Shown piece by piece: positions 7,447-55,222 of a DNA stretch of 64,000 nt. The first letter of the stretch is position 1. Every line of letters begins with the position of its first letter. Location: positions 299,522,001 to 299,586,000 of the forward strand of contig NC_067402.1 of NCBI RefSeq assembly GCF_016432865.1, read 5' to 3'. The DNA is from Antechinus flavipes. Taxonomy: Eukaryota. Both the position numbers and the translations under genes were made by a program. A model generated the notes under the pieces. The model saw nothing but the letters and a program-made list of their open reading frames with translations. It did not search any database and was not told the origin of the DNA.

Positions 7447-7448
<2 letters not shown>

Positions 7449-7482: not shown

Positions 7483-7484
<2 letters not shown>

Positions 7485-8477: not shown

Positions 8478-8918
8478 TGACCCGTCTAGCAGGTCGTCAA
8501 TCGTGAGTCTCGAAGTGGAGCATCACCGTAAGGCAAAGGCCCGTAGGGCAAAAAGCCTGTAAGGCATAGCCTGTAGGGCAAAAAGCCTGGTAACAAAGAA
8601 CAAAGGAGGGAAACTGCCAAGTGGGGTTTAAAGCAGCTCCAGTTTATTGAGGCACACAATTCAGCTTATATAGGGTGGCTCAGGAATGTCACGTATGTAG
8701 GAATGCAGTTACACAATGCACAAGGTATAGAGGAGGGGGCTGAGGTCTTGTGATGAGGGTCATAAGTCCAGGGGTCCGATATCAGATGGTGATTGATGTC
8801 AGCACATCTTGTGAGATATGAAGTTCTGGAGCCAGGGAGCGGATAACCATCTCAGCACAATGGTGTTGACACAGTTGTCATTTATTAGCTCAGACCTAAG
8901 GGTATGGGGTCCCTGGCA
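8478..8918 (-). mobile_element. Solo ERV LTR with 6-bp TSD (class II/beta-like TSD length)
   Basis: TG...CA termini with CCCTTT on both sides (8472-8477, 8919-8924). The empty site is visible in unit C (GGCCCTGTGGCTTCC, ~42895). Reverse-strand AATAAA near 8646 and TATA near 8668. Confidence 0.88.
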
Positions 8919-9195
8919 CCCTTTGGCTTCCTTAGTGGCTACCAGAAAAATCAGTGAAAAGCCAAGGGAGAGATGAGGGATGGAACAAAAGGGGTGGGGA
9001 AGAACAGGACCCGCAATCACTTTGTAATATTCGGATGGCCAAGCCCCTTGCTGAACCAACTGCTCCGAGGCCAATTATTGAAAAGTCCCCGGCTTCTATG
9101 CACGGATTTCATAAAGCAGCTGCTCTTGCCCATCGTTGAAGCCATTGTTGGCTGTATCTGGATAAAAGATTTGCGGTGTTTCCAACTTCCTCCAG

Positions 9196-9975
9196 ATGAC
9201 AAAGTCCCATTCTCTGGGGAATGGCTGTCCCAGAGCAGTCAGAAATCCTCACACCCCGACCGCGGTGACTCTGAGGCCTCCGCTGGAAGGGAAGGCCGAG
9301 GTCCGCGGGGCCTTGAGGTAGACACGGTTCTTTCAGGTCCCGATCTCTCGGAACCACCCTCTACAAGTGCCGGGACCCCACACCTACCTGAGCCACCTCC
9401 ACCGTTGGAGGTCTTTCCACCTTCAAATCCAGGTCCCTGGGTGAGGAAATTTCTCCAGAGTGGGCATTACGGACTGGCCAAGGGTCCGGCCATGACCCAG
9501 GCCCGGAAACCCCGCCCCTTCGGACAGCTTTCACCACCAAGCAGATCAGGACTCTGGAGAGCTCCTCCAAACGCCCGCACTAACTGGGCGCGGCAGAGAG
9601 GAGAAAATTGGCAGGCGGGATGCAGCTGTCTCAAGTTCAGATCAAAACCTGGGTCCAAAGTCGCCGCAAGAGCCTGAAACGCCAGTTGCAGGACTTGGGG
9701 CCCCCCCGACCCCCCTCCAGGCTTCCCCGTCCACTTTTATAGCCCCTCTATCCCAGTGCTCAGGACCACTGCCTCCGTGGGCCTGCCGTATGTGTACCCC
9801 AATTGGCCGCAGCTCCGGGGCTCCGAACTTGTCCAGGAGCTTGTTGCCGATGTCTCCTCTGCTCCCTCTGCCCTTTCCCCGGCTCCTGAAAAGTTGCTCC
9901 TCCTGCCATCGAGTCGGTGCTGGCTCCTCTGCTAAGCGGCTGTCAGACCAGGCCGCCTTCCTGGGGGCGATGTGA
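9196..9975 (+). pseudogene. VENTX: VENTX-like homeobox processed pseudogene, copy A
   Basis: ATG ACA AAG at 9196, then a 1-nt frameshift into PFSGEWLSQSSQ (resembles the VENTX N-terminal WLSQSS motif). Homeobox ~9509-9688 reads PLRTAFTTKQIRTLESSSKRPH*LGAAERRKLAGGMQLSQVQIKTWVQSRRKSLKRQLQD, against human VENTX RVRTAFTMEQVRTLE...MQLSEVQIKTWFQNRRMKHKRQMQD. TAA at 9581-9583 (homeodomain Tyr25). No intron at Q44/I45. A-rich tract at ~10229-10250. Confidence 0.85.
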
Positions 9976-10739
9976 CTTTAGAGGCCCTGGTATAATCCCC
10001 CCTGGTAGGGGGTGACTGGTACTGAGAGAGGAGAGAAAATAAGGGAGCAAGAGATAGATCCCTTCGGTAGAGAGTTTAACTCGGAAGACTTCAGTAAATA
10101 ATGGCCTGCTTTGTCTTCTGCCCCATGGAAGTACTCCATACATGAACTTGTACATATTTGCGAAATTATTTGAAGTAGATTATGAACAGAGAATTATTTA
10201 TGGACATATGAAATAATTATGTTTATTAAAGTAAATAATAAATAAAAGAATAGATTCTACAATTCTAAATGTACTTTCTCTTTTTTCCTTTCCTCTCTGC
10301 CCTTGAATGGAGAATTTCTTATTCTCCAAGAATAAGATTTTCTTGGCGGGAATATCATTCTCAGGGAATAAGTGATCTGTGGAAAGTCATTTTTTGAAGA
10401 CCCATTTTATGTATGAGGAAGGGAAGTATCAAGTAAATGTGACATCTTGCCTGGGGTTGTGACTTTCCCCAAGAAAGCTTATCTTGCTCTGAGTGGATGC
10501 AAGATCATTTGGGTTTGCAGATTAATGGAGACATTTTTGGTGATTTTACATAATTTTACTGGGTTCATTCAGGTCAAACAGAGTTCACTCTAGTCACACT
10601 AAGCTGGCCTGACAAGTTAGAGAAGTATCAAGTCTTTATCCCAAGAATCTGAATCTGCTCCATCAGACAAGTAGCACCGGTATCCTGGCCCATGACATTC
10701 TATATAGCAGGGGCAGGTAAAAAACGTGGGTAAAAGGTA

Positions 10740-10930
10740 TGGGAGATGTGGAAGAGGAGAGAAGAGGGAGCTCATGGAACATGACCCTAATTTTTTTTTC
10801 TGTAAAATGAAGTATAAGGTTCTTAGTTGAGAGAGTTGAGGGAGGGAAGCAATGAAAGGGTTGAGGAGAAGTGAGCAAGTCTGGGTGATCTGCTGTGGAG
10901 AGTGGGAAAGGGAGCCAGTGAGGGTGATCT
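10740..10930 (-). mobile_element. LINE-2 ORF2 remnant (marker of array units)
   Basis: Minus-strand translation PSTLSTKNLILHFTEKKIR resembles the L2/CR1 ORF2 motif (LSADDFASYFTEKI). Paralogs lie near 29460, 39690, 44610 and 53190. Confidence 0.55.
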
Positions 10931-12659
10931 ATTTTCTTGGAGTCACAGGGGAGAGTTGAGTGCCAGGTGGATCCCAAGGCTATTCAACAAGGATGAGCAT
11001 CTCTGATGTGAGGGCTTGCCAAATTGCTCGACATGTATTTATAGTGTTACACTTTGAATGTCAAACTTTTTATTGAGTCATTTGTTTGAGAGGATAAGAA
11101 CAATTGGTGAAGTACTCTGTAAAAGTCAAAGCTGCTTCAACGATCCCCTAGGATGCTTTTCCAGGTGAGCCCCAGTCTGGGCCTGGTCTAAGGGGCCTCT
11201 CCCTCTCCCAGAGGCCGGCTCTCTCCTATCCAGCCTATGTGTGGCCTGGTGATCCAGTATTTATAGGACCAGGGTTGTTCATCCGCAAAAAGGATCCCCG
11301 AGTTAGGGTGCAGGCAGGTCATGGACCGCTTCTGATGTTTCAGGGTAAAACAATTCCCAGCCATGTGCAGGGGAAAGGCTCCCTAGATCAGCATCCTATT
11401 TATAGCAGAAAGCCCCAGGCAGTCGGAGTAGATAACCCACATGGTGCTCCATAAACAATCGGTTCCTTCAGAAAAAGAGAGAGAACTGAAGGGAGGAGGA
11501 GAGTGGAGGTGGGGAAAGGGAAGAGAAACACCTAGGAAAGGGAAAGAGAAGATGTAAACAAGAGAGCAAGGTGGTTTTTCTCCTTGGAAACCAAGTTAGC
11601 AATTGTGCCCTCCTTGAATTCTTTATGGAAATTGCCACAGTGCCTAGGGGGGCACTGGATTTGAACCTCCAAGAAAAATAACTGGCTTGGGAATTTCTAC
11701 AGCAAGCCCCAGGATCTTGGGTTTCCTTTTATCAATCAAGCTTGGAGGGCAGGAAGAGCCTGGAGGGTGAAGGCTGTCCCATGCCCCAACCTCAAGCAGA
11801 TCTGCAAAGTTTTCTGAGATCTTTCCAATCCTGAACTTCGACCTAGATTTCTAAGCCTTGAATGGGGGTGGAAACGAGCCATTACTGAAATTTTCTGATA
11901 CTGATTCAGAAAGGGAACAGCTTGGAGGAGGAAGGATCACGAATAATCACACTCAAAGCAATGGTGCATAAATCTGAGAACTTAATTATTGGTAGGAGAA
12001 GAATGGTCTGGAATGGTCAAAGTTTGGAAAATGGAAAGTATTTTGGCAGAAATTAGGTTTAGACCAATGACTTACAGCCAAGATATTCCTGAGCGCTGTC
12101 CCAGATATCAATGTGTGAGCAAGGTCAAATAAAGGGAACGGATGCATTCCCTAGGACAGAAAGCAATTTCTGAATATTTCTCTCTTACGCCTTTTTGCCC
12201 ACAAATTATAGCCAGAGAACGAGTGCAGATTCTAACAATGGGGTTTAGAGTGGTGATTAAGGGTGTGAAGTGCGGATTGGGCAAAAGAAAGCTAGGGTGA
12301 CAAAGCTTTCTTTTTCCCCTGGGGCCTGCAGGACTGAGGACTTTAGTGCGCACTGTCCTTTGGTGCAGAAACACTGGCTCTTGGACCTTCATCCTTACCT
12401 CAGAATCCTAAGGGCAGAACTATGCTGGCCCCAGGCTATATTGTGAGGCTGGGGCCAATAACCCTTGTGGTACATGTAGAGCTTCCCCAAACTCCCAAGG
12501 GTGGGGTGTCCTGAGCTCCTAAAACACGGCCACACGGGACGCTCAAAGCTCCAGCAAGGGTAGACTAAGAGTTCCCTAAGGCGCTTGTACTGAGCGGTGG
12601 GGCTCCCCAAATGCTTTTAGGGTGGAGCTTCCAAAAAGAAAGAAGTTCCTCACACCCTA

Positions 12660-12730
12660 AAGGAGTGGGGGCGTGGTTCCGCAGAGTCTTTGTGGCCTAG
12701 GGGCGGGGATCTCCAAATCACTCTTTAGAG
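12660..12730 (+). promoter_or_regulatory. Putative TATA-less promoter of Ras-like gene A (two GC boxes)
   Basis: GGGGGCGTGG (~12667) and GGGGCGGGG (~12700) Sp/KLF-type boxes at conserved spacing in units A, B (~31385-31430) and C (~46489-46550). A CpG-rich tract follows. Confidence 0.45.
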
Positions 12731-13560
12731 CCCTAGCACTGAGCAGGAAGAGGACCTCTACTCCATTTCTTATTGTACAACTCTTAAAGACTATACCTGA
12801 ATGCGACCTGACTGGGTATTTTTACAGCTCCGAAACGGTATGTAGAGGCCAGCTGATTAGTTCATGTTAGCGGGATGTTCTGGGTGCTCATTGAGCCCAG
12901 TCTCAGTTAACAGCAATGGGGTGGGTGGCACGTGGATCCCAAGTTAGTGCCATCTTGGACTGCATCAATGCGGGAGGTATTGACGGAGCTCGGCTCCTCG
13001 TGGGGCCGGATTAGTGCGGGCAGTGCCGCTGGGCTCGCCTCCCTCCCCCCACCTTAGTTGCCTGAGCCCATACACTTTGGGTTTAGATGCAGGTTGAGAT
13101 GGGGGAGCCCAGTTTACAGCCGAGCCGGCCAGGGACTCTCGGCCCCTTTGATGCAGGAGCTGCAGACCCGGCAGCCGCCCAAACCGAAGCTCTTTGGGCT
13201 ACATTACTGTGGAGGAGCGTGGCCTGTAGAAATAATGAGCATTCTCTGGCCTCCTAGAACCTTCGGAATTGACCGCGGGGTCTTCTGGTCGGTCGGGGGT
13301 TTGAGAAGGGCGCCAGTGAATCCGAGAGTGTCTTGGAGAAGCCGGACAGAATGGGAGGGCCTGGAGCCCACGTGCTCTAATGGGTTTGGAATTGGTCAGA
13401 AGAACCAGAGGAGTCAGAGATTTTTAGTATCTGAAGTTCTTTCCCTGGGGGGAGGGTTGAACCTTGTTCAGGTGGGCCCAGAGAGCTGAAAGGGGGCGGG
13501 GAAGAGGTTTGGCAAAGAATTAAAACTGGAGGCCAGAGAAGTGACCTCCTGTGAAATGGG

Positions 13561-13588
13561 CTGACTTCTTGCAGCTTCTTCCTTGCAG
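13561..13588 (+). promoter_or_regulatory. Putative splice acceptor upstream of the Ras-like start codon
   Basis: CTGAC branch-like motif, a pyrimidine tract and TTGCAG, with AG at 13587-13588, 43 nt before the ATG. Conserved in unit C (AG at 47415-47416). Confidence 0.4.
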
Positions 13589-13631
13589 CCTGGAAAGTGA
13601 CTAGAGGCCACTTGAGCCCTTTCCAGTTCTC

Positions 13632-14192
13632 ATGGCTTCTTGTGTCCATACCTCCATCGGTGATTCAGACGGACTCACAACCAAGATGTATAAGTTGGCG
13701 GTGATGGGCACCTGTTCTGTGGGCAAGAGTGCACTGATCATGCAGTTTAGTAGGAATCATTTTGTGACGGAGTATGACCCCACGACCCAAGATTTCTATA
13801 GTAAGGATACAATGGTGGACGAAGAGCAGTGTCAGCTGGACATCATGGATACCACAGGCAATGGAGCATTTTATTATCTGAGGGATGAGTCCATAAGCTG
13901 GGGAGAGGGATTCCTCTTGGTCTATGCAGTGAATGACCTCTACTCTTTTGAGAATGTGAATTTCTTCTGGGACATTCTGCAGTGGCTCAAGGGCACCGAC
14001 CGCGTACCCGTGGTGTTGGTGGCAAACAAAGTAGACGTGACCAACAGGCTGGTGGACCCCACAATGGGCCAGGAGGTGGCCAGGAGCTTCGGGTTCCCTT
14101 ATGTGGAGACCTCAGCCAAGACTGGACAAGGTGTGGAGCAAGCCTTCCATGAGCTGGTTCGAGAAATTCAGAGGAAGCGAGCTGAGGAGTAA
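13632..14192 (+). CDS. Ras-subfamily small GTPase (ERAS-like architecture), copy A; 186 aa, C-terminally truncated, no CAAX
   Basis: All G boxes present: GTCSVGKS, T35, DTTG, NKVD, ETSAK. Collinear with HRAS at an offset of 16. A TAA at 14190-14192 precedes an in-frame tail LKILPNTEQKEACGCKCCTIQ* ending at 14258. Confidence 0.82.
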   Translation: MASCVHTSIGDSDGLTTKMYKLAVMGTCSVGKSALIMQFSRNHFVTEYDPTTQDFYSKDTMVDEEQCQLDIMDTTGNGAFYYLRDESISWGEGFLLVYAVNDLYSFENVNFFWDILQWLKGTDRVPVVLVANKVDVTNRLVDPTMGQEVARSFGFPYVETSAKTGQGVEQAFHELVREIQRKRAEE

Positions 14193-14996
14193 CTCAAGAT
14201 TCTCCCTAATACTGAGCAGAAGGAGGCCTGTGGGTGCAAGTGTTGCACCATCCAGTGAACAGGTACACCCTTATCCTGATCCTGCCCCCTAATTCCCCTC
14301 TCCCCTGGCCTAGAATATCTCCAGATCCCCTGGCCACTCCCCAGCCTTCAAGACCTTCATCTGGACCCTTCCTTCTGCCTGCTCTTCACTTCCAAGCCCT
14401 TTTGGGCCTTTTAAACAGGAGCCACTTGGAGGGACCCGTCTGTGTTTCTATATTAAGAGTTTTGTTTTGGATTTTTCCTTTTGATTCGCCTTTTGAGCAG
14501 GAATGACTTAAGTCAATGCCTGGATATCCTGAACAGGCAAGGAAAGACTCCATTTCTCCTTGAGTGCGCAGCCTCCCCCAGCCTCTCTGGCTGCCAGAGG
14601 CCCCAGAGAAAGCCAACTTCCTGGAGGCTTTCTCTCCAGTCCGACCCTCATCTTCAGCAGCCTCCTCTGCCTTCCTAGAGGCCATCTGTGGGGTTTTCTT
14701 TATTGAGCTTTCTCTTGCTCTCCCAACTGAGACCCTGCCTCCGGAGACCAGGGCAAAGGGGTTCTCTCTCCTGCCCCTGGACTTGGTGTATTTGCTGTCT
14801 GGAGCCAGGTCACCACCCCTGTTGTGTCCCAGAAGACCTTGTTTGTGGTGTTGGTGAGGAGCCCTGCTCTGAACTGGTCCCCATTCAGTGACCTTAAAGA
14901 CCAGACCGGAGGGGTGGGGGGGAGGAGGGATTTTTTTTTTTTGTTACTCATGTTGAGCGTGTTTGTTTTCAACTTGCTTATCATCTGGAGCACTTT

Positions 14997-15158
14997 TTTT
15001 GTTTTTCTTTTGTTTTCTTTTTTTTCTGAGGCGATTGGAGTTAAGTGACTTGCCCGGGCCACACTGTTAGGAAATGTTAAGTGTCTGAAGCCAGATTTGA
15101 ACTCTAGTCTTCCAAAATTTGGGGCTGATGCTGCAACCTCTGCCCATCTAGCTGCCCC
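14997..15158 (-). mobile_element. Marsupial CORE SINE (WSINE1-like) with A-tail and 12-bp TSD, in the Ras 3' UTR
   Basis: Ends CTAGCTGCCCC (reverse of the GGGGCAGCTAG start). T-rich tail at left. TSD CTGGAGCACTTT at 14985-14996 and 15158-15169. Absent at the paralogous site of unit C (~48818). Confidence 0.9.
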
Positions 15159-15611
15159 TGGAGCACTTTGAATAGCAGTGAGGGCTTTGGGCGGAATGGG
15201 GCTGCCTCCTACCAGCAGGATGCCTTTAGACATAAGTGCTATTAAAATTTGTTTTAGCAGCCAGATGCACCCCTTTAGACATTGCAAGTTGAATTACTTT
15301 AATTGCCTCCAAGAGAAGTGGAGTGGGGGGGCCTGGCTATAAATGTTCTGAGCAGATACCTTACAGCTGCAAGTCAGGTGGGAGTCTGCTAAGGAGCCTT
15401 CTGACAGGGGCATCTTTTGTATTATCTCAGGATTTATGGTGAAAAGGGCAGGGGGTGATTTTCCTGTTTCAGTTAAAAGTATTAAGGATTCTAAAAATAC
15501 CTGTTTGGTTTTAGGGGTGGGGAGTGAATGGGAAGAGGAATTCATTTTAAGGGACTTCCTTCACACTTGGATTCAAAGTTGATTCTTTTTCTTTTTCTTG
15601 GATTACTTATA

Positions 15612-18478: not shown

Positions 18479-19471
18479 GACAATAGATATAACCAGCAGT
18501 CTGTTTTCATAGCAAAGATAATTGGCAAGTACAAGTGAAAATCATTGTGGCTGGTGTGGCTAGCCTCTGTCCATGATCCTGGGTTATTCTAAAAAAATAG
18601 CCACCTCATTTCTAGGAAAGATTTTAGACATGGAAAAAAGGAGATGGAGGGAAGCATATTCTCAAAGGAGAATAGGGATTAGGAAAGACTTCTGGTAGAA
18701 GATGAACTTAGCTGGGATTTGAACAAAGCTAGAAAATAATTTGTCCTTAATCACTTCAATACACTTAGAGGATATTGGAAAGTATCCACGTGACTTATAA
18801 ATCCAGGTGTCAGCTGCACAGGTTATTTCCATGTTAGTGCAGATCCATGTCATCAAGCAAGGTGAGGGAAAATCTGAGTCTTCTGAAAAACTGGCAACAA
18901 TTATGAGGAATACACAGAAACAGAAGTTTTGAAGAGAAGAACAGACTCACTGGGGATTTTAATCACAGAGGAAAGATATCTATGGGAGAACCAAGAATCA
19001 AATTCCAAGTGGTCTGCCTCACTTTTCCTTGCTCATAGGCACGCTTTATACTCAACTTTCCCAAGTAAAAACAATACAACATCTGTCCACTTTGAAAATT
19101 TGAAGTTGGTGTCTTCTCCACCAGAAAATAATCAGTTCAGAAACTGTCTCTTCTAGGAGAAGGGCTCCTTTCTCTCTCTCTTCTTTAGTCCTATCATATT
19201 GGACTAAGAAGGTCCTCTCCTTTGGCTTATTGAAGAGAAGTCATGACTTAGTGAATATTACTATAGTGGCAGAAACTAGGTGAATCCTACAGTCTGTTTC
19301 CATAGCAGAGAACATTTGGAAAATAAAGTGAAGGTTTCAGTGCCTAATGTTGCTAACCCTTGTCCATGGTCCCGAATTGTCTAAGAAAGTGGATGCCCTG
19401 TATCTAGGTCAGCTGAGTCCCTAGAAAAATCATGCACGTGTTTCTACTGGGTTTATACCCCAAAGAGAACT

Positions 19472-27638: not shown

Positions 27639-27915
27639 CCCTTTGGCTTCCTTAGTGGCTACCAGAAAAATCAGTGAAAAGCCAAGGGAGAGATGAGGGA
27701 TGGAACAAAAGGGGTGGGGAAGAACAGGACCCGCAATCACTTTGTAATATTCGGATGGCCAAGCCCCTTGCTGAACCAACTGCTCCGAGGCCAATTATTG
27801 AAAAGTCCCCGGCTTCTATGCACGGATTTCATAAAGCAGCTGCTCTTGCCCATCGTTGCAGCCATTGTTGGCTGTATCTGGATAAAAGATTTGCGGTGTT
27901 TCCAACTTCCTCCAG

Positions 27916-28696
27916 ATGACAAAGTCCCATTCTCTGGGGAATGGCTGTCCCAGAGCAGTCAGAAATCCTCACACCCCGACCGCGGTGACTCTGAGGCCTC
28001 CGCTGGAAGGGAAGGCCGAGGTCCGCGGGGCCTTGAGGTAGACACGGTTCTTTCAGGTCCCGATCTCTCGGAACCACCCTCTACAAGTGCCGGGACCCCA
28101 CACCTACCTGCGCCACCTCCACCGTTGGAGGTCTTTCCACCTTCAAATCCAGGTCCCTGGGTGAGGAAATTTCTCCAGAGTGGGCATTACGGACTGGCCA
28201 AGGGTCCGGCCATGACCCAGGCCCGGAAACCCCGCCCCTTCGGACAGCTTTCACCACCAAGCAGATCAGGACTCTGGAGAGCTCCTCCAAACGCCCGCAC
28301 TAACTGGGCGCGGCAGAGAGGAGAAAATTGGCAGGCGGAATGCAGCTGTCTCAAGTTCAGATCAAAACCTGGCTCCAAAGTCGCCGCAAGAGCCTGAAAC
28401 GCCAGTTGCAGGACTTGGGGCCCCCCCGACCCCCCCTCCAGGCTTCCCCGTCCACTTTTATAGCCCCTCTATCCCAGTGCTCAGGACCACTGCCTCCGTG
28501 GGCCTGCCGTATGTGTACCCCAATTGGCCGCAGCTCCGGGGCTCCGAACTTGTCCAGGAGCTTGTTGCCGATGTCTCCTCTGCTCCCTCTGCCCTTTCCC
28601 CGGCTCCTGAAAAGTTGCCCCTCCTGCCATCGAGTCGGTGCTGGCTCCTTTGCTAAGCGGCTGTCAGACCAGGCCGCCTTCCTGGGGGCGATGTGA
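27916..28696 (+). pseudogene. VENTX: VENTX-like homeobox processed pseudogene, copy B
   Basis: Same post-ATG frameshift and TAA (28301-28303). The downstream frame reads MQLSQVQIKTWLQSRRKSLKRQLQD. Confidence 0.85.
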
Positions 28697-31600
28697 CTTT
28701 AGAGGCCCTGGCATAATCCCCCCTGGTAGGGGGTGACTGGTACTGAGAGAGGAGAGAAAATAAGGGAGCAAGAGATAGATCCCTTCGGTAGAGAGTTTAA
28801 CTCGGAAGACTTCAGTAAATAATGGCCTGCTTTGTCTTCTGCCCCATGGAAGTACTCCATACATGAACTTGTACATATTTGTGAAATTATTTGAAGTAGA
28901 TTATGAACAGAGAATTATTTATGGACATATGAAATAATTATGTTTATTAAAATAAATAATAAATAAAAGAATAGATTCTACAATTCTAAATGTACTTTCT
29001 CTTTTTTCCTTTCCTCTCTGCCCTTGAATGGAGAATCTCTTATTCTCCAAGAATAAGATTCTCTTGGCGGGAATATCATTCTCAGGGAATAAGTGATCTG
29101 TGGGAAGTCATTTTTTGAAGACCCATTTTATGTATGAGGAAGGGAAGTATCAAGTAAATGTGACATCTTGCCTGGGGTTGTGACTTTCCCCAAGAAAGCT
29201 TATCTTGCTCTGAGTGGATGCAAGATCATTTGGGTTTGCAGATTAATGGAGACATTTTTGGTGATTTTACATAATTTTACTGGGTTCATTCAGGTCAAAC
29301 AGAGTTCACTCTAGTCACACTAAGCTGGCCTGACAAGTTAGAGAAGTATCAAGTCTTTATCCCAAGAATCTGAATCTGCTCCATCAGACAAGTAGCACCG
29401 GTATCCTGGCCCATGACATTCTATATAGCAGGGGCAGGTAAAAAACGTGGGTAAAAGGTATGGGAGATGTGGAAGAGGAGAGAAGAGGGAGCTCATGGAA
29501 CATGACCCTAATTTTTTTTCTGTAAAATGAAGTATAAGGTTCTTAGTTGAGAGAGTTGAGGGAGGGAAGCAATGAAAGGGTTGAGGAGAAGTGAGCAAGT
29601 CTGGGTGATCTGCTGTGGAGAGTGGGAGAGGGAGCCAGTGAGGGTGATCTATTTTCTTGGAGTCACAGGGGAGAGTTGAGTGCCAGGTGGATCCCAAGGC
29701 TATTCAACAAGGATGAGCATCTCTGATGTGAGGGCTTGCCAAATTGTTCGACATGTATTTATAGTGTTACACTTTGAATGTCAAACTTTTTATTGAGTCA
29801 TTTGTTTGAGAGGATAAGAACAATTGGTGAAGTACTCTGTAAAAGTCAAAGCTGCTTCAACGATCCCCTAGGATGCTTTTCCAGGTGAGCCCCAGTCTGG
29901 GCCTGGTCTAAGGGGCCTCTCCCTCTCCCAGAGGCCGGCTCTCTCCTATCCAGCCTATGTGTGGCCTGGTGATCCAGTATTTATAGGACCAGGGTTGTTC
30001 ATCCGCAAAAAGGATCCCCGAGTTAGGGTTCAGGCAGGTCATGGACCGCTTCTGATGTTTCAGGGTAAAACAATTCCCAGCCATGTGCAGGGGAAAGGCT
30101 CCCTAGATCAGCATCCTATTTATAGCAGAAAGCCCCAGGCAGTCGGAGTAGATAACCCACAAGGTGCTCCATAAACAATCGGTTCCTTCAGAAAAAGAGA
30201 GAGAACTGAAGGGAGGAGGAGAGTGGAGGTGGGGAAAGGGAAGAGAAACACCTAGGAAAGGGAAAGAGAAGATGTAAACAAGAGAGCAAGGTGGTTTTTC
30301 TCCTTGGAAACCAAGTTAGCAATTGTGCCCTCCTTGAATTCTTATGGAAATTGCCACAGTGCCTAGGGGGCACTGGATTTGAACCTCCAAGAAAAATAAC
30401 TGGCTTGGGAATTTCTACAGCAAGCCCCAGGATCTTGGGTTTCCTTTTATCAATCAAGCTTGGAGGGCAGGAAGAACCTGGAGGGTGAAGGCTGTCCCAT
30501 GCCCCAACCTCAAGCAGATCTGCAAAGTTTTCTGAGATCTTTCCAATCCTGAACTTCGACCTAGATTTCTAAGCCTTGAATGGGGGTGTAAACGAGCCAT
30601 TACTGAAATTTTCTGATACTGATTCAGAAAGGGAACAGCTTGGAGGAGGAAGGATCACGAATAATCACACTCAAAGCAATGGTGCATAAATCTGAGAACT
30701 TAATTATTGGTAGGAGAAGAATGGTCTGGAATGGTCAAAGTTTGGAAAATGGAAAGTATTTTGGCAGAAATTAGGTTTAGACCAATGACTTACAGCCAAG
30801 ATATTCCTGAGCGCTGTCCCAGATATCAATGTGTGAGCAAGGTCAAATAAAGGGAACGGATGCATTCCCTAGGACAGAAAGCAATTTCTGAATATTTCTC
30901 TCTTACGCCTTTTTGCCCACAAATTATAGCCAGAGAACGAGTGCAGATTCTAACAATGGGGTTTAGAGTGGTGATTAAGGGTGTGAAGTGCGGATTGGGC
31001 AAAAGAAAGCTAGGGTGACAAAGCTTTCTTTTTCCCCTGGGGCCTGCAGGACTGAGGACTTTAGTGCGCACTGTCCTTTGGTGCAGAAACACTGGCTCTT
31101 GGACCTTCATCCTTACCTCAGAATCCTAAGGGCAGAACTATGCTGGCCCCAGGCTATATTGTGAGGCTGGGGCCAATAACCCTTGTGGTACATGTAGAGC
31201 TTCCCCAAACTCCCAAGGGTGGGGTGTCCTGAGCTCCTAAAACACGGCCACACGGGACGCTCAAAGCTCCAGCAAGGGTAGACTAAGAGTTCCCTAAGGC
31301 GCTTGTACTGAGCGGTGGGGCTCCCCAAATGCTTTTAGGGTGGAGCTTCCAAAAAGAAAGAAGTTCCTCACACCCTAAAGGAGTGGGGGCGTGGTTCCGC
31401 AGAGTCTTTGTGGCCTAGGGGCGGGGATCTCCAAATCACTCTTTAGAGCCCTAGCACTGAGCAGGAAGAGGACCTCTACTCCATTTCTTATTGTACAACT
31501 CTTAAAGACTATACCTGAATGCGACCTGACTGGGTATTTTTACAGCTCCGAAACGGTATGTAGAGGCCAGCTGATTAGTTCATGTTAGCGGGATGTTCTG

Positions 31601-32351: not shown

Positions 32352-32912
32352 ATGGCTTCTTGTGTCCATACCTCCATCGGTGATTCAGACGGACTCACAA
32401 CCAAGATGTATAAGTTGGCGGTGATGGGCACCTGTTCTGTGGGCAAGAGTGCACTGATCATGCAGTTTAGTAAGAATCATTTTGTGACGGAGTATGACCC
32501 CACGACCCAAGATTTCTATAGTAAGGATACAATGGTGGACGAAGAGCAGTGTCAGCTGGACATCATGGATACCACAGGCAATGGAGCATTTTATTATCTG
32601 AGGGATGAGTCCATAAGCTGGGGAGAGGGATTCCTCTTGGTCTATGCAGTGAATGACCTCTACTCTTTTGAGAATGTGAATTTCTTCTGGGACATTCTGC
32701 AGTGGCTCAAGGGCACCGACCGCGTACCCGTGGTGTTGGTGGCAAACAAAGTAGACGTGACCAACAGGCTGGTGGACCCCACAATGGGCCAGGAGGTGGC
32801 CAGGAGCTTCGGGTTCCCTTATGTGGAGACCTCAGCCAAGACTGGACAAGGTGTGGAGCAAGCCTTCCATGAGCTGGTTCGAGAAATTCAGAGGAAGCGA
32901 GCTGAGGAGTAA
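32352..32912 (+). CDS. Ras-subfamily small GTPase, copy B; 186 aa, no CAAX
   Basis: Protein identical to copy A except codon 41 (Lys vs Arg). Same premature TAA and the same intact downstream CGCKCCTIQ tail. Confidence 0.82.
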   Translation: MASCVHTSIGDSDGLTTKMYKLAVMGTCSVGKSALIMQFSKNHFVTEYDPTTQDFYSKDTMVDEEQCQLDIMDTTGNGAFYYLRDESISWGEGFLLVYAVNDLYSFENVNFFWDILQWLKGTDRVPVVLVANKVDVTNRLVDPTMGQEVARSFGFPYVETSAKTGQGVEQAFHELVREIQRKRAEE

Positions 32913-38498: not shown

Positions 38499-38669
38499 TT
38501 CGGGGTCCCTTATATGGAGACATCAGCCAAGACTGGACAAGGTGTAGAGTAAGCCTTCCATGAGCTGGTTGGTGAAATTCGGAGGCTGCGAGCTGAGGAG
38601 GAGCTCAAGAGTCACCCAAATACTGAGCAGAGGGAGGTCTGTGGGTGCAAGTGTTGTACAATCCAGTGA
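38499..38669 (+). pseudogene. 5'-truncated Ras-like fragment (last 56 codons) with an internal stop
   Basis: FGVPYMETSAKTGQGVE*AFHELVGEIRRLRAEEELKSHPNTEQREVCGCKCCTIQ*. TAA at 38550-38552. Followed by ~680 bp of paralogous 3' UTR. Confidence 0.9.
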
Positions 38670-40103
38670 GTAGGTACACCCTTATCCTTATATTGCCCCC
38701 TAATTCCCCTCTCACCTGGCCTAGAATACCTCCAAATCCCCTACCCACTCCCCAGCATTCAAGACTTTCATCTGGACCCTTCCTTCTGCCTTCTCTTCCC
38801 TGCCAAGCCCTTTTGGCCCTTATCAGGATTTCTCCAGGAGTCTCTTGGAGGAACCCGTCTGTGTTTCTATGTTAAGAGATTTGTGTTGGATTTTTGATTT
38901 TGTTTCCCATTTGAGCAGGAATGACTACCTCACTGCCCGGGTATCCTGAAAGGCAAGGAAAGACTCCATTTCTCCCTGAATGTGCAGCCTCTCCTAGCCT
39001 CCCAGCCTGTCAGAGGCCCCAGAGACAGCCAGCTTCCTGGCTGCTTTCTGTCTAGTCTGGCCCTCATTTTCAGCAGCTTCCTCTGCCTTCCTGGAGGCTG
39101 TGTGTGAATTTTCTTTGTTGGGCTTTCCCCTGCTCTCCCAACAGAGATGCTGTCTCTGGAGACCAGGGCAAAGTGATTCTCCCTCCTATTCCTGGGCTTG
39201 GTGGATTTGCTGTCTGGAGCTAGGTCCCCTTCCCTGTCTCCCCCAGAAGACCTTGTTTATGGTGTTGGTCAGGAGCCCTGCTCTGAAGTGGTCCCCATTC
39301 AGTGACACTCAAGGCCAGACTGGGGGAATATGATTTTTTTTTGTTACTCACATTGTGTGTTCTTATTCTCAATTTGCATATCTTATTATTTTGATAATAA
39401 ATCTTACCAGTTACATTCTACATATTTTTTTCTCCCTTGGTTGATTCCCTTCTTTCTCTACTCCTCCCTTCCCTCCCCTTGTCTGCAACATTTGCTACAG
39501 AATATTGTTATTTGACTGTGTACTCTAAGCTGGCCTGAAAAGTCAGAGAAGCACCGAATCTATATCCCAAGAATCTGAATCTGCTCCATCTGACAAGTGG
39601 CACCGGTATTCTGACCCATGACATTCTATATAGGAGCCCCTGGTCACAAAGGTGGGTAAAAGGTATGGGAGAGGGGGAACAGGAGAGAAGAGGGAGCTCA
39701 TGGAGGATGCTCCTAACTTTTTTTTGTAAAAATGAGGTATAAAGTTCTTAGTTGAGACAATTGAGGGAGGAGAGCAATGAAAGGGTGGAGGAGGGGTGAG
39801 AAGGTTTGGGAGATCTGGGAGATCTGCTATGGAGAGTGGGAGAGAGAGCCAGTGAGGGTGATGTATCTTCTTGGAGTCTCAGGGGAGAGTTGAGTGCCAG
39901 GTGGATCCCAAGGGTATCCAAGGAGGATGAGCATTTCTGGTGTGAGGGCTTGCCAGAGTGTTTTTGGGACATTGATAGTGTTACACCTTGAAGGTCAAAC
40001 TCTTTCACTAAGTCATTTGGTTAAGAGGATAAAGAATAAATGGCAAAATTTTCTGCAAAAGTCAAAGCATTACCGAAATGCTAACTGTCCTAACTTCTGC
40101 AGA

Positions 40104-42850: not shown

Positions 42851-43207
42851 GTAGGCTAGGAAAAATTGGGGAGTGAGACCATCCAATATGGGGAAGGCCC
42901 TGTGGCTTCCTTAGTTGCTACCTGAAAAATCATAGTGAAAATACAAGGGAGGGGTAAGGAATGCAACAAAGAGGGTGGGGAAGAACAGGATCCGCAATCA
43001 TTTTGTAATATTTGGATGGCCAAGCCCTTTGCTGAACCAACTGCTCCGAGGCCAATTATTGAAAAGTCCCGACTTCTATGCAAGGATTTTATAAAACAGC
43101 TGCTCTTGCCCATCGTTGAAGCCGTTAATGGCTGTCTCTGGATAAAAGATCCTGCAGTTTTGTCTACAAGAAGAGCTTCCCCCTCCTCCGTTTCTAACTT
43201 CCTCCAG

Positions 43208-43980
43208 ATGACAAAGGCCCATTCTCTGGGGAATGGCTGTCCCAGAGCAGCCAGAAATCCTCACACCCCGACTGCAGTGACTCTGAGGCCTCCTCTGGAA
43301 GGGAAGGCCGAGGTCCGCGGGGCCTTGCGGGAGACACGGTTCCTTCGGGTGCCGATATCTCTGAACCACCCTCTACAAGTGTCGGTTCCCCAGACCTACC
43401 TGCCATTGGAGGTGGGAAGATCTCAAATCCAGGTCTCTGGGTGAGGAAATTTCTCCGGACATCAGCAGGGGTCACTGCGGACTGGCCGAGGGCCCGGAAA
43501 TCCCGCCCCTTCGACAGCTTTCGCCACCAAGCAGATCAGCACGCTGGAGAGCTCCTCCAAACGCCTGCACTAACTGGGAGGGGCAGAGAGGCGAAAACTG
43601 GCGGGAGGGATGCAGCTGTCGCAAGTTCAGATCAAAACCTAGCTCCAAAGTCGCCGCAAGAGGTTGAAACGCCAGTTGCAGCATTGGGGCCCCCCGACTC
43701 CCCTCCAGGCTTCTCCCTCCACTTTTACAGCCCCCTGCCCCAGTGCTCAGCACCAGCGCCGCCGCGGGCCTCCAGTACATGTACCCCGGTTGGCCACAAC
43801 TCGGGAGCTCCGAGCTTGCCAGGAGCCTTTTGCCGCTGCCCTGGTTCTCCCCCTCTGCCCCCTCTGCCCTTTCCTCGGCTCCTGCAAAGTTGCCCCTCCT
43901 GCCATCGCGTCAGTGCTGGCTCGTTTGCTAAGCGGTTGTCCCGACCAGGCCTCCTTCCTGAGCGCAATGAGACGGTAGAG
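43208..43980 (+). pseudogene. VENTX: VENTX-like homeobox processed pseudogene, copy C
   Basis: ATG ACA AAG GCC followed by the same 1-nt frameshift. Shared TAA at 43571-43573 and an extra TAG at Trp48. C-terminal LSTSAAAGLQYMYPGWPQLG resembles human VENTX YSTSSCLANGLQLLCPWAPLSG. Confidence 0.85.
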
Positions 43981-46488
43981 GCCTATAATCCCCCCTGGTG
44001 GGGCTGACTGGTACTGAGAGAGGAGAGAGAATACGGGAGCAAGAGACAGATCCCTCCGGGAGAGAGTCTAACTCGGAAGACTTCAGGAATTAATGGTCTG
44101 CTCTGTCTTCTGCCTCTTGGCAGTACTCCATACATGAACTTGTACATATTTGCGAAATTATTTGAAGTGCATTATGTATAGAGATTTAGTTATACACATA
44201 TTAAATAGTTATATTTTAAACAAATAAAAAATAGCTTCTACATTTATAAAAGTGCTTTGTTTTTTCCTTTCATCTCTGCCCTTGAATAGGGAATCTCTTC
44301 TTATTTTGAGAATAAATCTTACCAGTTACATTCCACATGTTTCCTTTTCTCTGTTGGCCGATTCCCTTCTTTCTCTATTCCTCCTTTCCCTCTAAAATGC
44401 TTTCCTTGTCTGCCTCAAGTCCCTACAGAATATTGTTATTTGACTGTGTGTGACTCTAAACTGGCCTGAAAAGTTAGAGAAGCACCGAATCTTTATCCCA
44501 ATTATCTGAATCTGCTCCCTCTGACAAGTAGCACCGGTATCCTGGCCCATGACATTCTATATAGGAGGCCCTAGTCACAAAGGTGGGTAAAAGGTATGAG
44601 AGATGTGAAACAGGAGAGAAGAGGGAACTCGTGGAGAATGCCCTTAACTTTTTTCTGTAAAAATGAGGTATAAAGTTCTTAGTTGAAAGAGTTGAGGGAG
44701 GGAAGCAATGAAAGGGTTGAGGAGGGGTGAGCAGGTTTGGGAGATCTGTGGAGAGGGAAAGGGAGCCAATGAGGGTGATCTATTTTCTTGGAGTCACAGG
44801 GGAGAGTTGAGTGCCAGGTGGATCCCAAGGGTATCCAAGGAGAATCCAAGCATCTCTGGTGTAAGGGCTTGCCAAAGTGTTCTGGGTACATTACAAGGGT
44901 GTTACACCTTGAACGTCAAACTTTTTAGTGAGTCCTTTGGTTGAGAGGATGAAAATAATTAGTGAAGTACCTTGGAAAAGTCAAAGCTGCCTCAATGAGC
45001 CTCGATAAAGGCTTTTCCTGGCAAACCCGTCTGGACTTTGCCTAAGGGGCCTCTCCCTCTCCCAGAGGCCGGCTCTCTACTATCCAGCCTATGTGTGGCC
45101 TGGTGATCCAGTATTTATACGAACAGATTTGTTCATCCGTAAAAGGATCCCCGAGTTAGGGTGCAGGCAGGTCATGGACCGCCTTTGATGTTTCAGGGTA
45201 AAACAATTCCCAGCCATGTGCAGGGAAAAGGCTCCCTAGATCAGCATCCTGTTTATAGCAGAAGGCCCCAGGCAGTCGGAGCAAATAACCCACATGGTGC
45301 TCCATAAAACAATCTGCTTCTTTAGAAAAAGAGAGAACTGAAGGGGGCGATGAGTGATGGTGGGGAAGGAGGAGAGAAACGCGTTAGGGAAAAGGGAGAG
45401 AAGATATAAATAAGACAAAAGGAGGCATTTCCCCTAGGAAACCAAGTTAGCAATTGTAGCCTCCTTGAAATCATTATGGAGATTGCCACAGTGCCAGAGG
45501 GCGCTGGCTTTGGGCCTCCAGTAAAAATAGCTGGCAGGAGAAATTCTACAGCAAACCCCAGGATCCTTGGGCTTCCTATCAGCAATCAAGCTTGGAGGGC
45601 AAGAAGAGCTTGAATTGTGACGAATGTCCCATCCTCTGACCTCAAGCAGGTCTGCAAAGTTCCCTGAGATCTTTCCAATCCTGAAATCTGAGCTAGATTT
45701 CTAAGCCTTGAATGGGGGTGTAAACGAGCCATTACTGATATTACTTGATGCTGATTCAGAAAGGGAACAGCTTGGGAAGAGGAAGCATCATGAATAAGGA
45801 CACTCAAGCCAATGGGGAATAAACCTGAGAACTTAATTCCTGGTAGGAGAAGGCTGTAATCCTCTGGAATGGTCAAAGTTTGGAAAATGGAAAGCATTTT
45901 GGCAGAAATTAGGTTTCGAACAACGACTTATACCCAAGATATTCCTGAGCGTTGTAAAGGGAACGGATGCATTACCTAGGACAGAAAGCAATTTCTGAAT
46001 ATTTCTCTCTTATGTCTTCTTGGCCCACAAATTATAGCCAGAGAATGAGTGCAGATTCTAACAATGGGGTTTAGAGTGGTGATTAAGGGTGTGAAGTCCG
46101 GTTTAGGCAAAAGAAAGCCAGGGTGACAAAGCCTGCTTTTTTCCCTTGGGCCTGAACGACTGAGGACTTTAGTGCGCACTATCCTTTGGTGCAGAAGCAC
46201 TGGCTCTTGGACCTTCATCCTTACCTCAGAATCCCAGGGGCAGAACTACCCTGGCCTCAGGCTACATTGTGAGGTTGGGGCCAATAATCCTTGTGGTACA
46301 CGTAGGGCTTCCCCGAACTCCTAAGGGTGGGGTTTCCTGAGCTCCCAAAACACTGCCACATGGGATGCTCAAAGCTTCAGCAAAGGTAGACTAGGGTTTC
46401 CAGCTGGCTCTCGTAGTGAGGGGTGGGGCTTCCCAAAATCTTATGGGTGGAGGTTCCAAAATGAAGGAAATTCCCCCATCCCAAAGGC

Positions 46489-47460: not shown

Positions 47461-48087
47461 ATGGCTTTTTGTGTCCATACCTCCATAGGTGATCCAGAGA
47501 GACGCCGAACCAAGATGTATAAGTTGGTGGTGATGGGCACCTGTTCTGTGGGCAAGACTGCACTGATCATGCAGTTTGCTAAGGATCATTTTATGACCGA
47601 ATATGGTCCCACCATCCAAGATTCCTATCGGAAGCACACAGTGGTGGATGAAGAGCAGTGTCACCTGGACATCATGGATACCACAAGCACTGAAGCATTT
47701 TATTGCCTGAGGGATGAGTCCATGCACCGGGGAGAGGGATTCCTCTTAGTTTATGCAGTGAATGACCTCTACTCTTTTGACAATGTGAATATCCTCTGGA
47801 ACCATCTACAGGGAATCAAGGGCAACAACCGTATACCCGTGGTGTTGGTGGCCAACAAAGTAGATGTGACCGACAGGCTGGTGAACCATACAATGGGCCA
47901 GGAGGTGGCCAGGAGCTTCGGGGTCCCTTATGTGGAGACATCAGCCAAGACTGGGCAAGGTGTGGAGCAAGCCTTCCATGACTTGGTCCGAGAAATTTGT
48001 AGGCTGCGAGCTGAGGAGGAGCTTAAGAGTCTCCCTAATACTAAGCAGAAGAAAGTCTGGGAGTTCAAGTTTTGCACTATCCAGTGA
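47461..48087 (+). CDS. Ras-subfamily small GTPase (ERAS-like architecture), copy C; full-length 208 aa with CAAX (CTIQ)
   Basis: Uninterrupted ORF with GTCSVGKT, YGPTIQDSY, DTTS, NKVD, ETSAK and terminal CTIQ*. Confidence 0.92.
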   Translation: MAFCVHTSIGDPERRRTKMYKLVVMGTCSVGKTALIMQFAKDHFMTEYGPTIQDSYRKHTVVDEEQCHLDIMDTTSTEAFYCLRDESMHRGEGFLLVYAVNDLYSFDNVNILWNHLQGIKGNNRIPVVLVANKVDVTDRLVNHTMGQEVARSFGVPYVETSAKTGQGVEQAFHDLVREICRLRAEEELKSLPNTKQKKVWEFKFCTIQ

Positions 48088-52000: not shown

Positions 52001-52570
52001 GAGGTCTTCCCACCTTCAAATCCAAGTCCCTGGGTGAGGAAATTTCTCCGGACATCAGCAGGGGTCACTGCAGACTGGCCGAGGGCCCAGGCCTGGAAGC
52101 CCCGCCCTTCGGACGGCTCTCGCCACGAAGCAGATCAGCACTCTGGACAGCTCCTCCAAACGCCCGCACTAACTGGGCGCGGCAGAGAGGAGAAAACTGG
52201 CGGACGGGATGCAGCTGTCTCAAGTTCAGATCAAAACCAGCGTCCAAAGTCGCCGCAAGAGGCTGAAATTGCAGGACTGGGACCCCCCGACCCCCTTCAG
52301 ACTTCCCCCTCCACTTTTACAGCCCCCTGCCCAGTGCTCGGTACCACTGCCGCCGGGGGCCTGCAGTACGTGTACCCTGGTTGGCCGCAGCTCCGGGGCC
52401 CGAGCTTGCCAGGAACCTTTTGCCGCTGCCCTGGTTCTCCCCCTCTGTCCCCACTGCCCTTTCCCCGGCTCCTGCAAAGTTGCCCCTCCCACCATCGCGC
52501 CGGTGCTGGCTCGTCTGCTAAGCGGCTGTCCGGACCAGGCCTCCTTCCTGGGGGCGATGAGACTTTAGAG
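52001..52570 (+). pseudogene. VENTX: 5'-truncated VENTX-like homeobox pseudogene, copy D
   Basis: LRTALATKQISTLDSSSKRPH*LGAAERRKLADGMQLSQVQIKTSVQSRRKRLK, with the shared TAA at 52170-52172. Paralogy with the intergenic spacer continues to ~54500 but stops before a Ras gene. Confidence 0.83.
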
Positions 52571-55222
52571 GCCTATAAGCCTCCCTGGTGAGCCTGACTG
52601 GTACTGAGATAGGAGAGAGAAAAAGGAAGCAAGAGACAGATCCCTCCGAGAGAAAGTCTAATTTGGGAGACTTCAGGAAATAATAGTCTGCTCTGTCTTC
52701 TGCCCCATGGAAGTACTCCATACATGAACTTGCACATATTTGTGAAATTATTTGAAGTAGATTATGAACAGAGAATTTTTTATAGATAGAATAAATTTGG
52801 TTTTTAAATAAATAAATAAAAGAATAGCTTCTACAACTGTAAAAATGCTTTTTCTTTTTTCCTTTCATCCCTGCCCTTCAATGGGGAACCTCTTCCTATC
52901 TTGAGAATAAATCTTGCCAGTTACATTCCTAATGTTTCCTTTTCTCCCTTGGCTGATTCCCTTCTTTTTCTTCTCCTCCCTTCCCTCTAAAGTGCTTTCC
53001 TGGTCTGCCCCAAATCCCTACAGAATATTGTTATTTGACTGTGTACTCTAAACTGGCTTGAAATTTAGAGAAGCACTGAATCTATATCCCAAGAACCTGA
53101 ATCTGCTCTGACAAGTAGCACCACTATCCTGCCCCGTTATATTCTATATAGGAGGCCCTGGTCACAAAGGTCACAAAGATGTGAAAGAGGAGAGAAGAGG
53201 AGGCAAATGGAGAGTGGCCTTAACTTTTTTTTTTTTTTTTTTTTTTTTTGCAAAAATGAGGTATGAAGTTCTTAGTTGAGAGAGTTGAGGGAGGGAAGCA
53301 ATGAAAGGGTTGAGGAGGGGTGAGCAGGTTTTGGAGATCTGTTGTGGAGAGTGGAAGAGTGAGCCAATGAGGGTGATCTATATTCTTGGAGTCTCAGAGG
53401 AGAGTTGAGTGTCAGGTGGATCCCAAGGGTATCCAAGGAGGATGAGCATCTCTGGTGTGAGGGCTGGCCAAAGTGTTCTGAGTACATTCATAGTGTGACA
53501 CCTCTAACATCAAACTTTTTAGTGAGTCATTAGGTTGAGACAATGAAAACAATTGGCAAAGTGCTCTGGAAAAGTCAAAGGTGCCTCAATGAGCCTCAAT
53601 GGTGGTTTTTCCCAGCAAACCATGGTCTGGACTTTGTCTAAGGGGCCTCTCCCTCTCCCAGAGGCCGGCTCTCTATTATCCAACCTATGTGTGGCCTGGC
53701 CATCCAGGATTTATATAAACAGATTTGTTCATCCACAAAAGGATCCCTGAGTTAGGGTGCAGGCAGGTCATGGACCGCCTCTGATGTTTTAGGGTAAAAC
53801 AATTCCCTGCCGTGTGCAGGGAATATAGCAGAAAGCCCCAGACAGTTGGAGCACATAACCCACATGGTGCTCCATAAACAATCTGCTCCTTCAGAAAAAG
53901 AGAGAGAAGAAGTGAAGGGGGGGGGGAGGAAAGTGGGGGTGGGGCAAGAGAAGAGAAACACCTAGCAAAGGGAGAGAGAAGATGTAAACGAGAAAAAGGA
54001 GGTATTTCTCCTTGGAAACTATGTTAGCAACTGTGCCCTCCTTGAAGTCTTTATGGAAATTGCTACAGTGCCAGAGGGCACTGGATTTGAGCCTCCAAGA
54101 AAAATAGCTGGCTTGGGAAATTCTGCGACAAGCCCCAGGATCTTGGGTTTCTTTTTATCAATCAAGCTTGGAGGGCAAGAAGAGCCTGAAGGGTGAAGGT
54201 GTCCCATCCCCGGATCTCAAGCAGGTCTGCAAAGTTCTCTGAGATCTTTCCAATCCTGAAGTCCGAGCTAGATTTCTAAGCCTTGAATGGGGGTGTTAAA
54301 GAGCCATTACTGAAATTATTTGATGCTAATTCAGAAAGGAAACAGCTTGGAAGAGGAAAGATCAGGAATAATCACTCAAAGCAATGGTGGATAAATCTGT
54401 GAACTTAATTCCTGGTAGGAGAAGGCTGTAATTCTCTGGAATGGTCAAAGATTGGAAAATGGAAAGCATTTTGGCAGAAATTAGGTTTAGACCAACAATT
54501 TATACCACAATCCACAATCCACAACAAGTTCCAAATGATGAAAACATTAAGTTACACCATTCAAAAAATAGAATCACATTAGTAAATTTTTTTTTGGTTG
54601 AGGTGGGGATCTAAAGTGTACATTCAGGACATGTTGACAACTTGGTGATGTGTTGGTTGGTTTTAATGAACTATATTTCCCCTTTTTTGAGTAAATGAAA
54701 GGATAGTGTGCTGTGTAAGGAAATGGGGGAGGCTGCTGTATGAGAGTGATATGAAAACATAAGATAGAGATTTTATAGGAAACTTAAAAGGAATGTGTTC
54801 CAATACCCTAGTTTTCCACAAGGAAAGTTAAGGATGGTTGAATGAGTGAAGCCTTTTAAGGTTCTGGTAAAGTGAAGAGACCCATGGCCCTGGAAATGAT
54901 TTAATCGGCCCAGAGAAAAAAGATCAGCACCTCTGCTTATTACGGATTAAAAAAAGGAAGATAGAGGAAAAAATGCTTTAAAAGGCAGTACTTTCAATAA
55001 CCCCAAATCATTCCACTTTCTTCTAAGGAGGCACTTAAAAATTCTTATAACTTCAGCCCTTTTCTGTTGGCACATTTAAAAGAAAGCCCTCTCAACACAG
55101 CATTTTCATTCTTTTTGTTGTTGTTGTTTGCTTTCATTTTATTGTTTCTCTCTCTCTTTTTTTTACTGGTTTGATTTGATTATTCTTGTGTGGCACAATA
55201 ATTGTATAAATATGTATAGCTA

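Follow-up and report, generated by a model that had tools for sequence, protein, structure and literature searches.

A VENTX remnant and a Ras gene form a recurrent cassette

We analyzed a stretch of 64,000 nucleotides from the marsupial Antechinus flavipes (NC_067402.1; hereafter the window), which contains no N. It harbors three full copies (A, B and C) of a two-part cassette, in which the remnant of the homeobox gene VENTX is followed by a spacer of ~3.4 kb and an intact, intron-less Ras open reading frame (ORF), and two partial cassettes (Table 1). The VENTX part is a dead processed pseudogene, whereas the Ras ORFs, which belong to the marsupial MgRas family, are kept open by selection. 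Self-BLAST of the window, the ORFs and their spacing agree with the coordinates and the description that an initial annotation of the sequence had given for this module. The distance from the ATG of VENTX to that of Ras amounts to 4436 bp in both A and B and to 4253 bp in C. The VENTX-derived segments begin at 9179/9196, 27916 and 43181/43208, and a 5′-truncated segment begins at 52019. Cassettes A and B are part of a tandem duplicate of 18.7 kb (722-19471 = 19457-38171, 98.8% identity) and differ at only 29 positions over the 5.4 kb of the cassette itself (99.5% identical). Copy C is an older copy (42898-50797) of ~82% identity. Comparisons were made with loci from Sarcophilus (L001, L002 and L003, and L005 for the VENTX gene), Sminthopsis (L006 and L007), a dasyurid (L008) and Antechinus (L009).

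The homeobox remnant is a full-length processed VENTX pseudogene

Read in frame, the remnant yields a recognizable NK-like homeodomain with an in-frame stop. Pfam and PDB searches with the homeobox pieces returned only a generic NK-like homeodomain (E ~1e-4) and did not name VENTX. The sole database match of a 234-residue ORF over the N-terminal part was Sarcophilus VENTX (P0121, 274 residues), with 81% identity in the N-terminal block, and tblastn with P0121 covered residues 3-264 of 274 in copies A-C. At the nucleotide level, the retrocopy is 77-81% identical to the parental exons.

The parental Sarcophilus VENTX gene (L005) consists of three coding exons (6001-6247, 6736-6980 and 7091-7423) with GT/AG borders, and its intron 2 lies between homeodomain positions 44 and 45. 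The parental exons were aligned to the window individually rather than as a joined model, and the L005 blocks 5984-6247, 6754-6980 and 7088-7660 align to 9179-9425, 9426-9640 and 9638-10229, respectively. In copy A, the exon blocks abut at 9425/9426 and ~9640/9641, and both parental introns are precisely gone. The homology to the parent sets in shortly after the parental TATA box, a few tens of nucleotides before the ATG. In Sarcophilus VENTX, a TATATAAA box is found ~70 nucleotides upstream of the ATG (L005 5925-6000); as the retrocopies start just downstream of this TATATAAA box, the copied VENTX mRNA was full length. At the 3′ end, homology stops ~15 nucleotides past the parental ATTAAA and continues in four copies into an A-rich run of ~25 nucleotides (~10228-10253 in copy A), which is missing at the parent locus. 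Two candidate direct repeats that might represent a target-site duplication, AAGAAGAGCTTC versus AAGAATAGCTTC, which may belong to the 5′ untranslated region (5′UTR) itself, and the 7-mer TCTACAA, are ambiguous. The parent gene resides on Sarcophilus LR735555.1 at 661.49 Mb, near the end, and the cassette on LR735558.1 at 0.81 Mb. Thus, judging from the absent introns, the A-rich tail, the lack of linkage to the parent and the disabling mutations described below, the homeobox remnant is a full-length processed VENTX pseudogene, as its initial annotation as a dead retrocopy had proposed.

We compared nine retrocopies, namely copies A, B, C and the 52-kb partial of the window, two in Antechinus L009, the one in Sarcophilus L001, and the Sminthopsis orthologue in L006 together with its partial. 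In eight of the nine, spanning three genera, the parental TAC codon of homeodomain Tyr25 has turned into TAA or TAG (TAA in copy A). Each copy also carries 9-20 frameshifting insertions or deletions (indels; 10 in copy A), plus one or two stops; copy C, whose Sminthopsis orthologue lies at L006 5041-6009, combines the shared stop with an extra stop and 9 frameshifts. Because the Tyr25 stop codon is shared, the VENTX copy was dead before amplification, i.e., it was inactivated early. An intact homeobox gene elsewhere in the cluster was considered and rejected, as all nine examined copies are disabled.

The Ras genes are members of MgRas clade A

The Ras ORFs of copies A, B and C are uninterrupted and formed by a single coding exon encoding 186, 186 and 208 residues, respectively (Pfam Ras, E 1e-44 to 1e-45). 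The copy-A protein is 100% identical to Antechinus P0001, and its Sarcophilus orthologue P0003 also has 186 residues. All protein matches at 53-100% identity are marsupial, with H/K/NRAS next at ~50%. Among named proteins, the closest are annotated as ‘ras-like’ or ‘GTPase NRas-like’ in Antechinus flavipes, Sarcophilus harrisii and Sminthopsis crassicaudata, and more distant relatives were found in possum, opossum, wombat, koala, glider, monito del monte and bilby. A protein tree (FastTree) places the window copies within a dasyurid expansion of a clade that also holds Monodelphis and diprotodont members.

MgRas has been described as a marsupial-specific clade of single-exon Ras genes, apart from eutherian ERas (Mol Biol Evol 2026, PMC12866920). 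The family comprises three clades, A-C (clade A accounts for 17 of the 23 genes of the yellow-footed antechinus), and is arranged in two clusters, the second of which is found only in dasyurids and lies on chromosome 5 (PMC12866920). The Ras genes of the window are members of its clade A and not ERAS. Their initial designation as ERAS-type has to be given up, since the family is placed near but outside the eutherian ERas clade (PMC12866920) and no ERAS-named protein is found among the 120 best matches of the window Ras protein. Expression of MgRas genes was reported mostly from testes, ovaries and yolk sac (PMC12866920), and we infer a role in the germline.

Of the five G-box motifs, of which MgRas genes have four or more (PMC12866920), GxxxxGKS/T, T35, DxxG, NKVD and SAK are present, with DxxG broken to DTTS in copy C. 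In KRAS numbering, copies A and B carry G12C, G13S, A59T and Q61N, and copy C carries G12C, G13S, A59T, G60S and Q61T, in line with the annotated activated type of Ras. Both Gly12 and Gln61 are missing in every MgRas examined, from all three clades. According to established Ras biochemistry, this predicts poor intrinsic and GTPase-activating protein (GAP)-stimulated GTP hydrolysis, and MgRas proteins are thus probably GTP-locked Ras-like GTPases. Copies A and B, the Sarcophilus orthologue and the L009 paralogue stop right after the G domain without a hypervariable/CAAX tail. Most MgRas members, copy C included, keep a ...CTIQ CAAX box.

The retrocopy marks a sub-lineage of dasyurid MgRas genes

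The cluster is located near a chromosome end in Antechinus (CM028221.1, 294.8 of 300.5 Mb), and is found at 1.5-1.7 Mb of a 316.8-Mb chromosome in Sarcophilus and at 311.5-311.7 of 314.3 Mb in Sminthopsis. The chromosome has been assigned as chromosome 5 (PMC12866920). X-linkage, which the initial annotation had left to be checked, was rejected on this assignment and on the size of the chromosomes (288-317 Mb); the cluster is autosomal.

Presence or absence of the cassette was read in dasyurid loci (Antechinus, Sarcophilus and Sminthopsis). The copy-A cassette has an orthologue in Sarcophilus that is 86-90% identical throughout (L001/L002), and the copy-C cassette has one in Sminthopsis (L006), where the counterpart of the 52-kb VENTX-only partial also sits downstream (L006 15902-18360). 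Two further Antechinus units are present in L009 with a period of 13.4 kb. However, the linkage does not extend to the family as a whole. Five other MgRas genes, at four loci, have no VENTX retrocopy in their 10 kb of upstream sequence: both genes in L003, the L004 gene on another chromosome, the early-branching Sminthopsis clade-A gene in L007 and the basal dasyurid clade-A gene in L008. In Sarcophilus L003, a clade-A MgRas gene (3955-4524, minus strand) and the divergent MgRas gene P0061 (10001-10567, plus strand) stand head-to-head; the ~5.5 kb separating them hold no VENTX remnant.

The spacer at 10254-12295 aligns only to copies B and C, L001, L006 and L009, and not to L003, L007 or L008. 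Homology upstream of Ras begins at 12296 in the comparison with L007 and at 12378 in that with the clade-A gene of L003. As the homology common to all examined clade-A copies thus begins only ~1.3 kb upstream of the ATG, the retrocopy marks one clade-A sub-lineage in the dasyurid chromosome-5 cluster, and from this sequence comparison its insertion would have occurred no later than in the common ancestor of Sminthopsinae and Dasyurinae. At non-CpG sites, the retrocopy has diverged from its parent by 15-17%, and Antechinus and Sarcophilus orthologues are ~10-12% apart, which suggests, as an uncalibrated estimate, an insertion age of about two to three times that of the split between these two genera. 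The region shared with the other clade-A genes, 12296-13631, is presumably the promoter and 5′UTR of MgRas copy A. The ratio of observed to expected CpG (CpG o/e) is ~0.5 at 12501-13500 and 0.09-0.32 in the spacer, and identity to the Sarcophilus orthologue is 91.6% in this upstream region versus 88.7% in the spacer.

The Ras ORFs but not the VENTX copies are maintained by selection

The VENTX and Ras coding sequences are of similar length and share the same history, and therefore provide an internal control. In three pairwise comparisons, the VENTX retrocopy accumulated 9.7-14.4 indel events per kb, and the flanks 10-14.5. The Ras ORFs showed none in these comparisons versus 5.7-8.1 expected (P(0) = 0.003-0.0003). 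Ratios of non-synonymous to synonymous substitution rates (dN/dS), calculated by the Nei-Gojobori method, were 0.43 for copy A versus its Sarcophilus orthologue (p = 0.015), 0.33 for copy C versus its Sminthopsis orthologue (P0017/L006; p = 0.00015) and 0.6 for copy A versus copy C (p 0.05-0.06). Given the absence of indels and a dN/dS below 1 in Ras against neutral indel numbers in the retrocopy, we conclude that the Ras ORFs are maintained by selection and that the VENTX copy is not maintained as coding sequence. The roles proposed for the two parts in the initial annotation, with Ras as selected cargo and VENTX as passenger, are therefore borne out.

Copy A (13632-14192) and its L009 paralogue (10001-10561) gave a dN/dS of 1.28, which is not significant (5 synonymous and 23 non-synonymous changes), and this hints at a relaxed or diversifying evolution of the anchor-less type. 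The flanks of this pair are ~9% diverged but dS is 0.043, a contrast for which gene conversion or diversifying selection may account. In copy C and its Sminthopsis orthologue (L006 9947-10573), the invariant Gly60 of DxxG is replaced by Ser (DTTS), as it is in P0008 and P0024; the copy-C gene with its DTTS motif is still under clear purifying selection, as seen from the above dN/dS.

Microhomology at the junction of the youngest duplicate

The junction of the A/B duplicate is characterized by 15-17 nucleotides of microhomology (ACCCCAAA.AG.AC), which is present at both parental breakpoints (breakpoint regions of the duplication at 700-740, 19440-19480 and 38150-38175). The surrounding sequence resembles what we take to be the ‘LLGIYPKE’ region of LINE-1 (L1) ORF2. 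This suggests that unequal recombination between two L1 fragments gave rise to the A/B duplicate.

Further features of the window

No Pfam match was obtained for the long ORFs at 14700-15287, 33030-33710, 56361-57002, 62459-63013, 13058-13489 and 51983-52591. A GA-rich tandem array of ~600 bp occupies 56407-57001, with periods of 12, 22 and 112 bp at 64-76% matches, and contains long spurious ORFs on the minus strand. The segment 62001-64000 has the highest GC content of the window (0.566) and lies outside any cassette; one of the above ORFs (62459-63013, minus strand) encodes 184 residues within it.

Table 1 Features of the VENTX-MgRas cassettes in the window.
Feature	Position	Strand	Description
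Processed VENTX pseudogene copy A	9179..10253	+	Full-length mRNA copy; three exon blocks and A-rich tail
Spacer	10254..12295	+	Only in the VENTX-bearing cassette type; no detectable gene; CpG-poor
Upstream region common to examined clade-A MgRas copies	12296..13631	+	Moderately CpG-rich
MgRas clade-A gene copy A	13632..14192	+	186 residues, G domain only; Pfam Ras E 4.7e-44
A/B tandem duplication junction	19457..19471	.	15-17 nucleotides of microhomology
Processed VENTX pseudogene copy B	27899..28973	+	Near-identical tandem duplicate of A; same stop, one frameshift more
MgRas clade-A gene copy B	32352..32912	+	186 residues, one residue different from A
Partial cassette	38499..40068	+	Last 56 Ras codons and 3′ flank, fused to spacer sequence
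Processed VENTX pseudogene copy C	43181..44250	+	Blocks 43181-43404, 43426-43630 and 43628-44222
MgRas clade-A gene copy C	47461..48087	+	208 residues; CTIQ CAAX box kept; G60S/Q61T equivalents
Partial cassette	52001..54506	+	5′-truncated VENTX (52019-52807, exon-2/3 sequence) and spacer, without Ras gene

Origin of the cassette and alternative explanations

We are fairly confident that the locus represents an ordinary case of hitchhiking, in which a dead VENTX pseudogene travels within the known and expanding MgRas family. When crown Dasyuridae arose or earlier, a full-length VENTX mRNA would have been reverse-transcribed and integrated into the chromosome-5 cluster of dasyurids, ~3.4 kb upstream of a single clade-A MgRas gene, and the copy would have been inactivated early, as indicated by the shared Tyr25 stop. 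Later segmental duplications would have proceeded in units of 8-19 kb; because these are larger than the ~3-kb core common to clade-A genes, the dead retrocopy would have been carried along. The newest of them probably took place between L1-like repeats. Such a course of events would have left at least five full and two partial cassettes in Antechinus, and orthologous cassettes in Sarcophilus and Sminthopsis, with selection acting on the Ras ORFs and the retrocopy as a neutral passenger.

Several observations weigh against this scenario. At L003, the retrocopy may have been lost secondarily rather than being primarily absent. Six sequencing runs covering 8900-14300 behave as 20-30x genome resequencing, with the spacer covered evenly and splice-like joints absent; at sites that distinguish A from B, the contigs of these runs, which derive from other individuals, mostly have the B-type letter, and the A/B pair could be an assembly duplication or occur in the reference animal alone. 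Whether this pair is real does not affect the older copies and the orthologues. Finally, the base composition of the retrocopy is conspicuous. Methylated CpGs decay at roughly ten times the rate of other sites, and a faster decay than that of the retrocopy would be expected of a sequence that is inert and methylated. All copies show a CpG o/e of 0.5-0.6 and a GC content of 0.55-0.63 despite their divergence from the parent, as compared to a CpG o/e of 0.26 for the window. Of the parental CpGs, 41-52% survive, versus 69-72% expected if they decayed like other sites; CpG loss thus proceeded at only ~2-2.6x the rate of other substitutions, and heavy methylation would have left far fewer. Likewise, copies A and C have diverged slightly less by substitution in the retrocopy (12.6%) than in the spacer (~16%).

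This slow CpG loss suggests germline hypomethylation of the cluster, or at least of the retrocopy, as an insert dense in CpGs can act like an orphan CpG island. The retrocopy might accordingly have been co-opted, its CpG-rich body being a germline-unmethylated island that serves the downstream MgRas gene as an alternative promoter, enhancer or non-coding RNA gene and that favored retention and amplification of the sub-lineage. A precedent for transcription of such a copy is the human retro-pseudogene VENTXP1 (PMC2211742). However, GC-biased gene conversion near the chromosome end could also have slowed CpG loss. Moreover, the retrocopy has taken up indels at the neutral rate, among them a ~470-bp insertion in one copy and deletions of 13-21 nucleotides in others, and it lies between 4.25 and ~6.1 kb from the Ras ATG, depending on the copy. 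MgRas genes without a retrocopy keep open ORFs under similar constraint, and a separate CpG-rich region, conserved in all clade-A copies, lies directly upstream of the ATG. For the captured regulatory element considered in the initial annotation, the CpG decay thus lends indirect support, whereas the neutral indels, the variable spacing and the constrained genes lacking a retrocopy speak against it. We regard co-option as unlikely, and slightly less likely still its more specific form, in which the orphan island, as a source of a promoter, enhancer or long non-coding RNA, would give the sub-lineage a distinct early-embryo or germline program and so explain why the larger unit was retained.

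It is very improbable that the entire amplicon, including Ras, is an unstable segmental duplication in neutral decay, with Ras ORFs that are open merely because they are young. The missing CAAX tail in A, B, the Sarcophilus orthologue and an Antechinus paralogue would fit such a view, as would the dN/dS of A versus L009, which does not differ significantly from 1, and the fact that only 4 of the 23 antechinus MgRas genes were scored as gonad-expressed (PMC12866920). Yet the VENTX coding sequence, in the same cassette and over the same time span, acquired its 9-20 frameshifts per copy, while the Ras ORFs remained free of indels and evolved with a dN/dS significantly below 1 in both comparisons with orthologues. 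The neutral decay of all copies, which the initial annotation had named, together with a lack of Ras expression in any tissue, as the finding that would speak against its hypothesis, is thus not what we observe.

With the hitchhiking pseudogene as the preferred explanation, the retrocopy can be used as a rare-genomic-change marker. It defines a subset of the dasyurid clade-A expansion that descends from one founder cassette, probably predating crown Dasyuridae, and can help to order the duplications. In addition, the dead VENTX copy serves as a neutral control of the same locus and age, against which the MgRas ORFs, including the anchor-less forms of 186 residues, are visibly protected from indels. 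The MgRas study makes no mention of VENTX or a homeobox remnant and does not report dN/dS (PMC12866920); to it, the present analysis adds the retrocopy as a marker, the contrast in selection and the L1-like junction of the duplication, and the contrast in indels and dN/dS partly answers the dN/dS question that its authors left open. As the Ras family itself has already been described, the overall gain is modest.

Comparison with known systems

The Ras genes of the window do not differ from the published MgRas genes. They share with clade A of the second, dasyurid cluster the restriction to marsupials, the single coding exon and the arrangement in tandem clusters near the end of a large autosome; the proteins have 186-208 residues, those of full length ending in a ...CCTIQ tail, and the window proteins nest among those of Antechinus, Sarcophilus and Sminthopsis. 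The likeness to ERAS lies in the intron-less coding sequence, an N-terminal extension and substitutions at Gly12 and in the Gln61 region, which predict GAP-insensitive, GTP-bound behavior. However, ERAS is eutherian-specific and forms a clade of its own, separate from MgRas (PMC12866920), and the window proteins are no nearer to ERAS-named proteins than to H/K/NRAS (~50%), with A and B also lacking the CAAX box.

The VENTX part has its counterpart in human, where VENTX has given rise to seven retro-pseudogenes (Holland et al. 2007, PMC2211742), and the retrotransposition event itself is therefore unremarkable. Human VENTXP1-7 are likewise retrotransposed, intron-less and disabled copies with poly(A) remnants (PMC2211742), and they indicate that VENTX mRNA is reachable by the L1 machinery in germline or early-embryo cells. 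Unlike VENTXP1-7, the marsupial retrocopy is an independent insertion that was multiplied by segmental duplication at the DNA level and not by repeated retrotransposition, since the copies share both the stop codon and their flanks.

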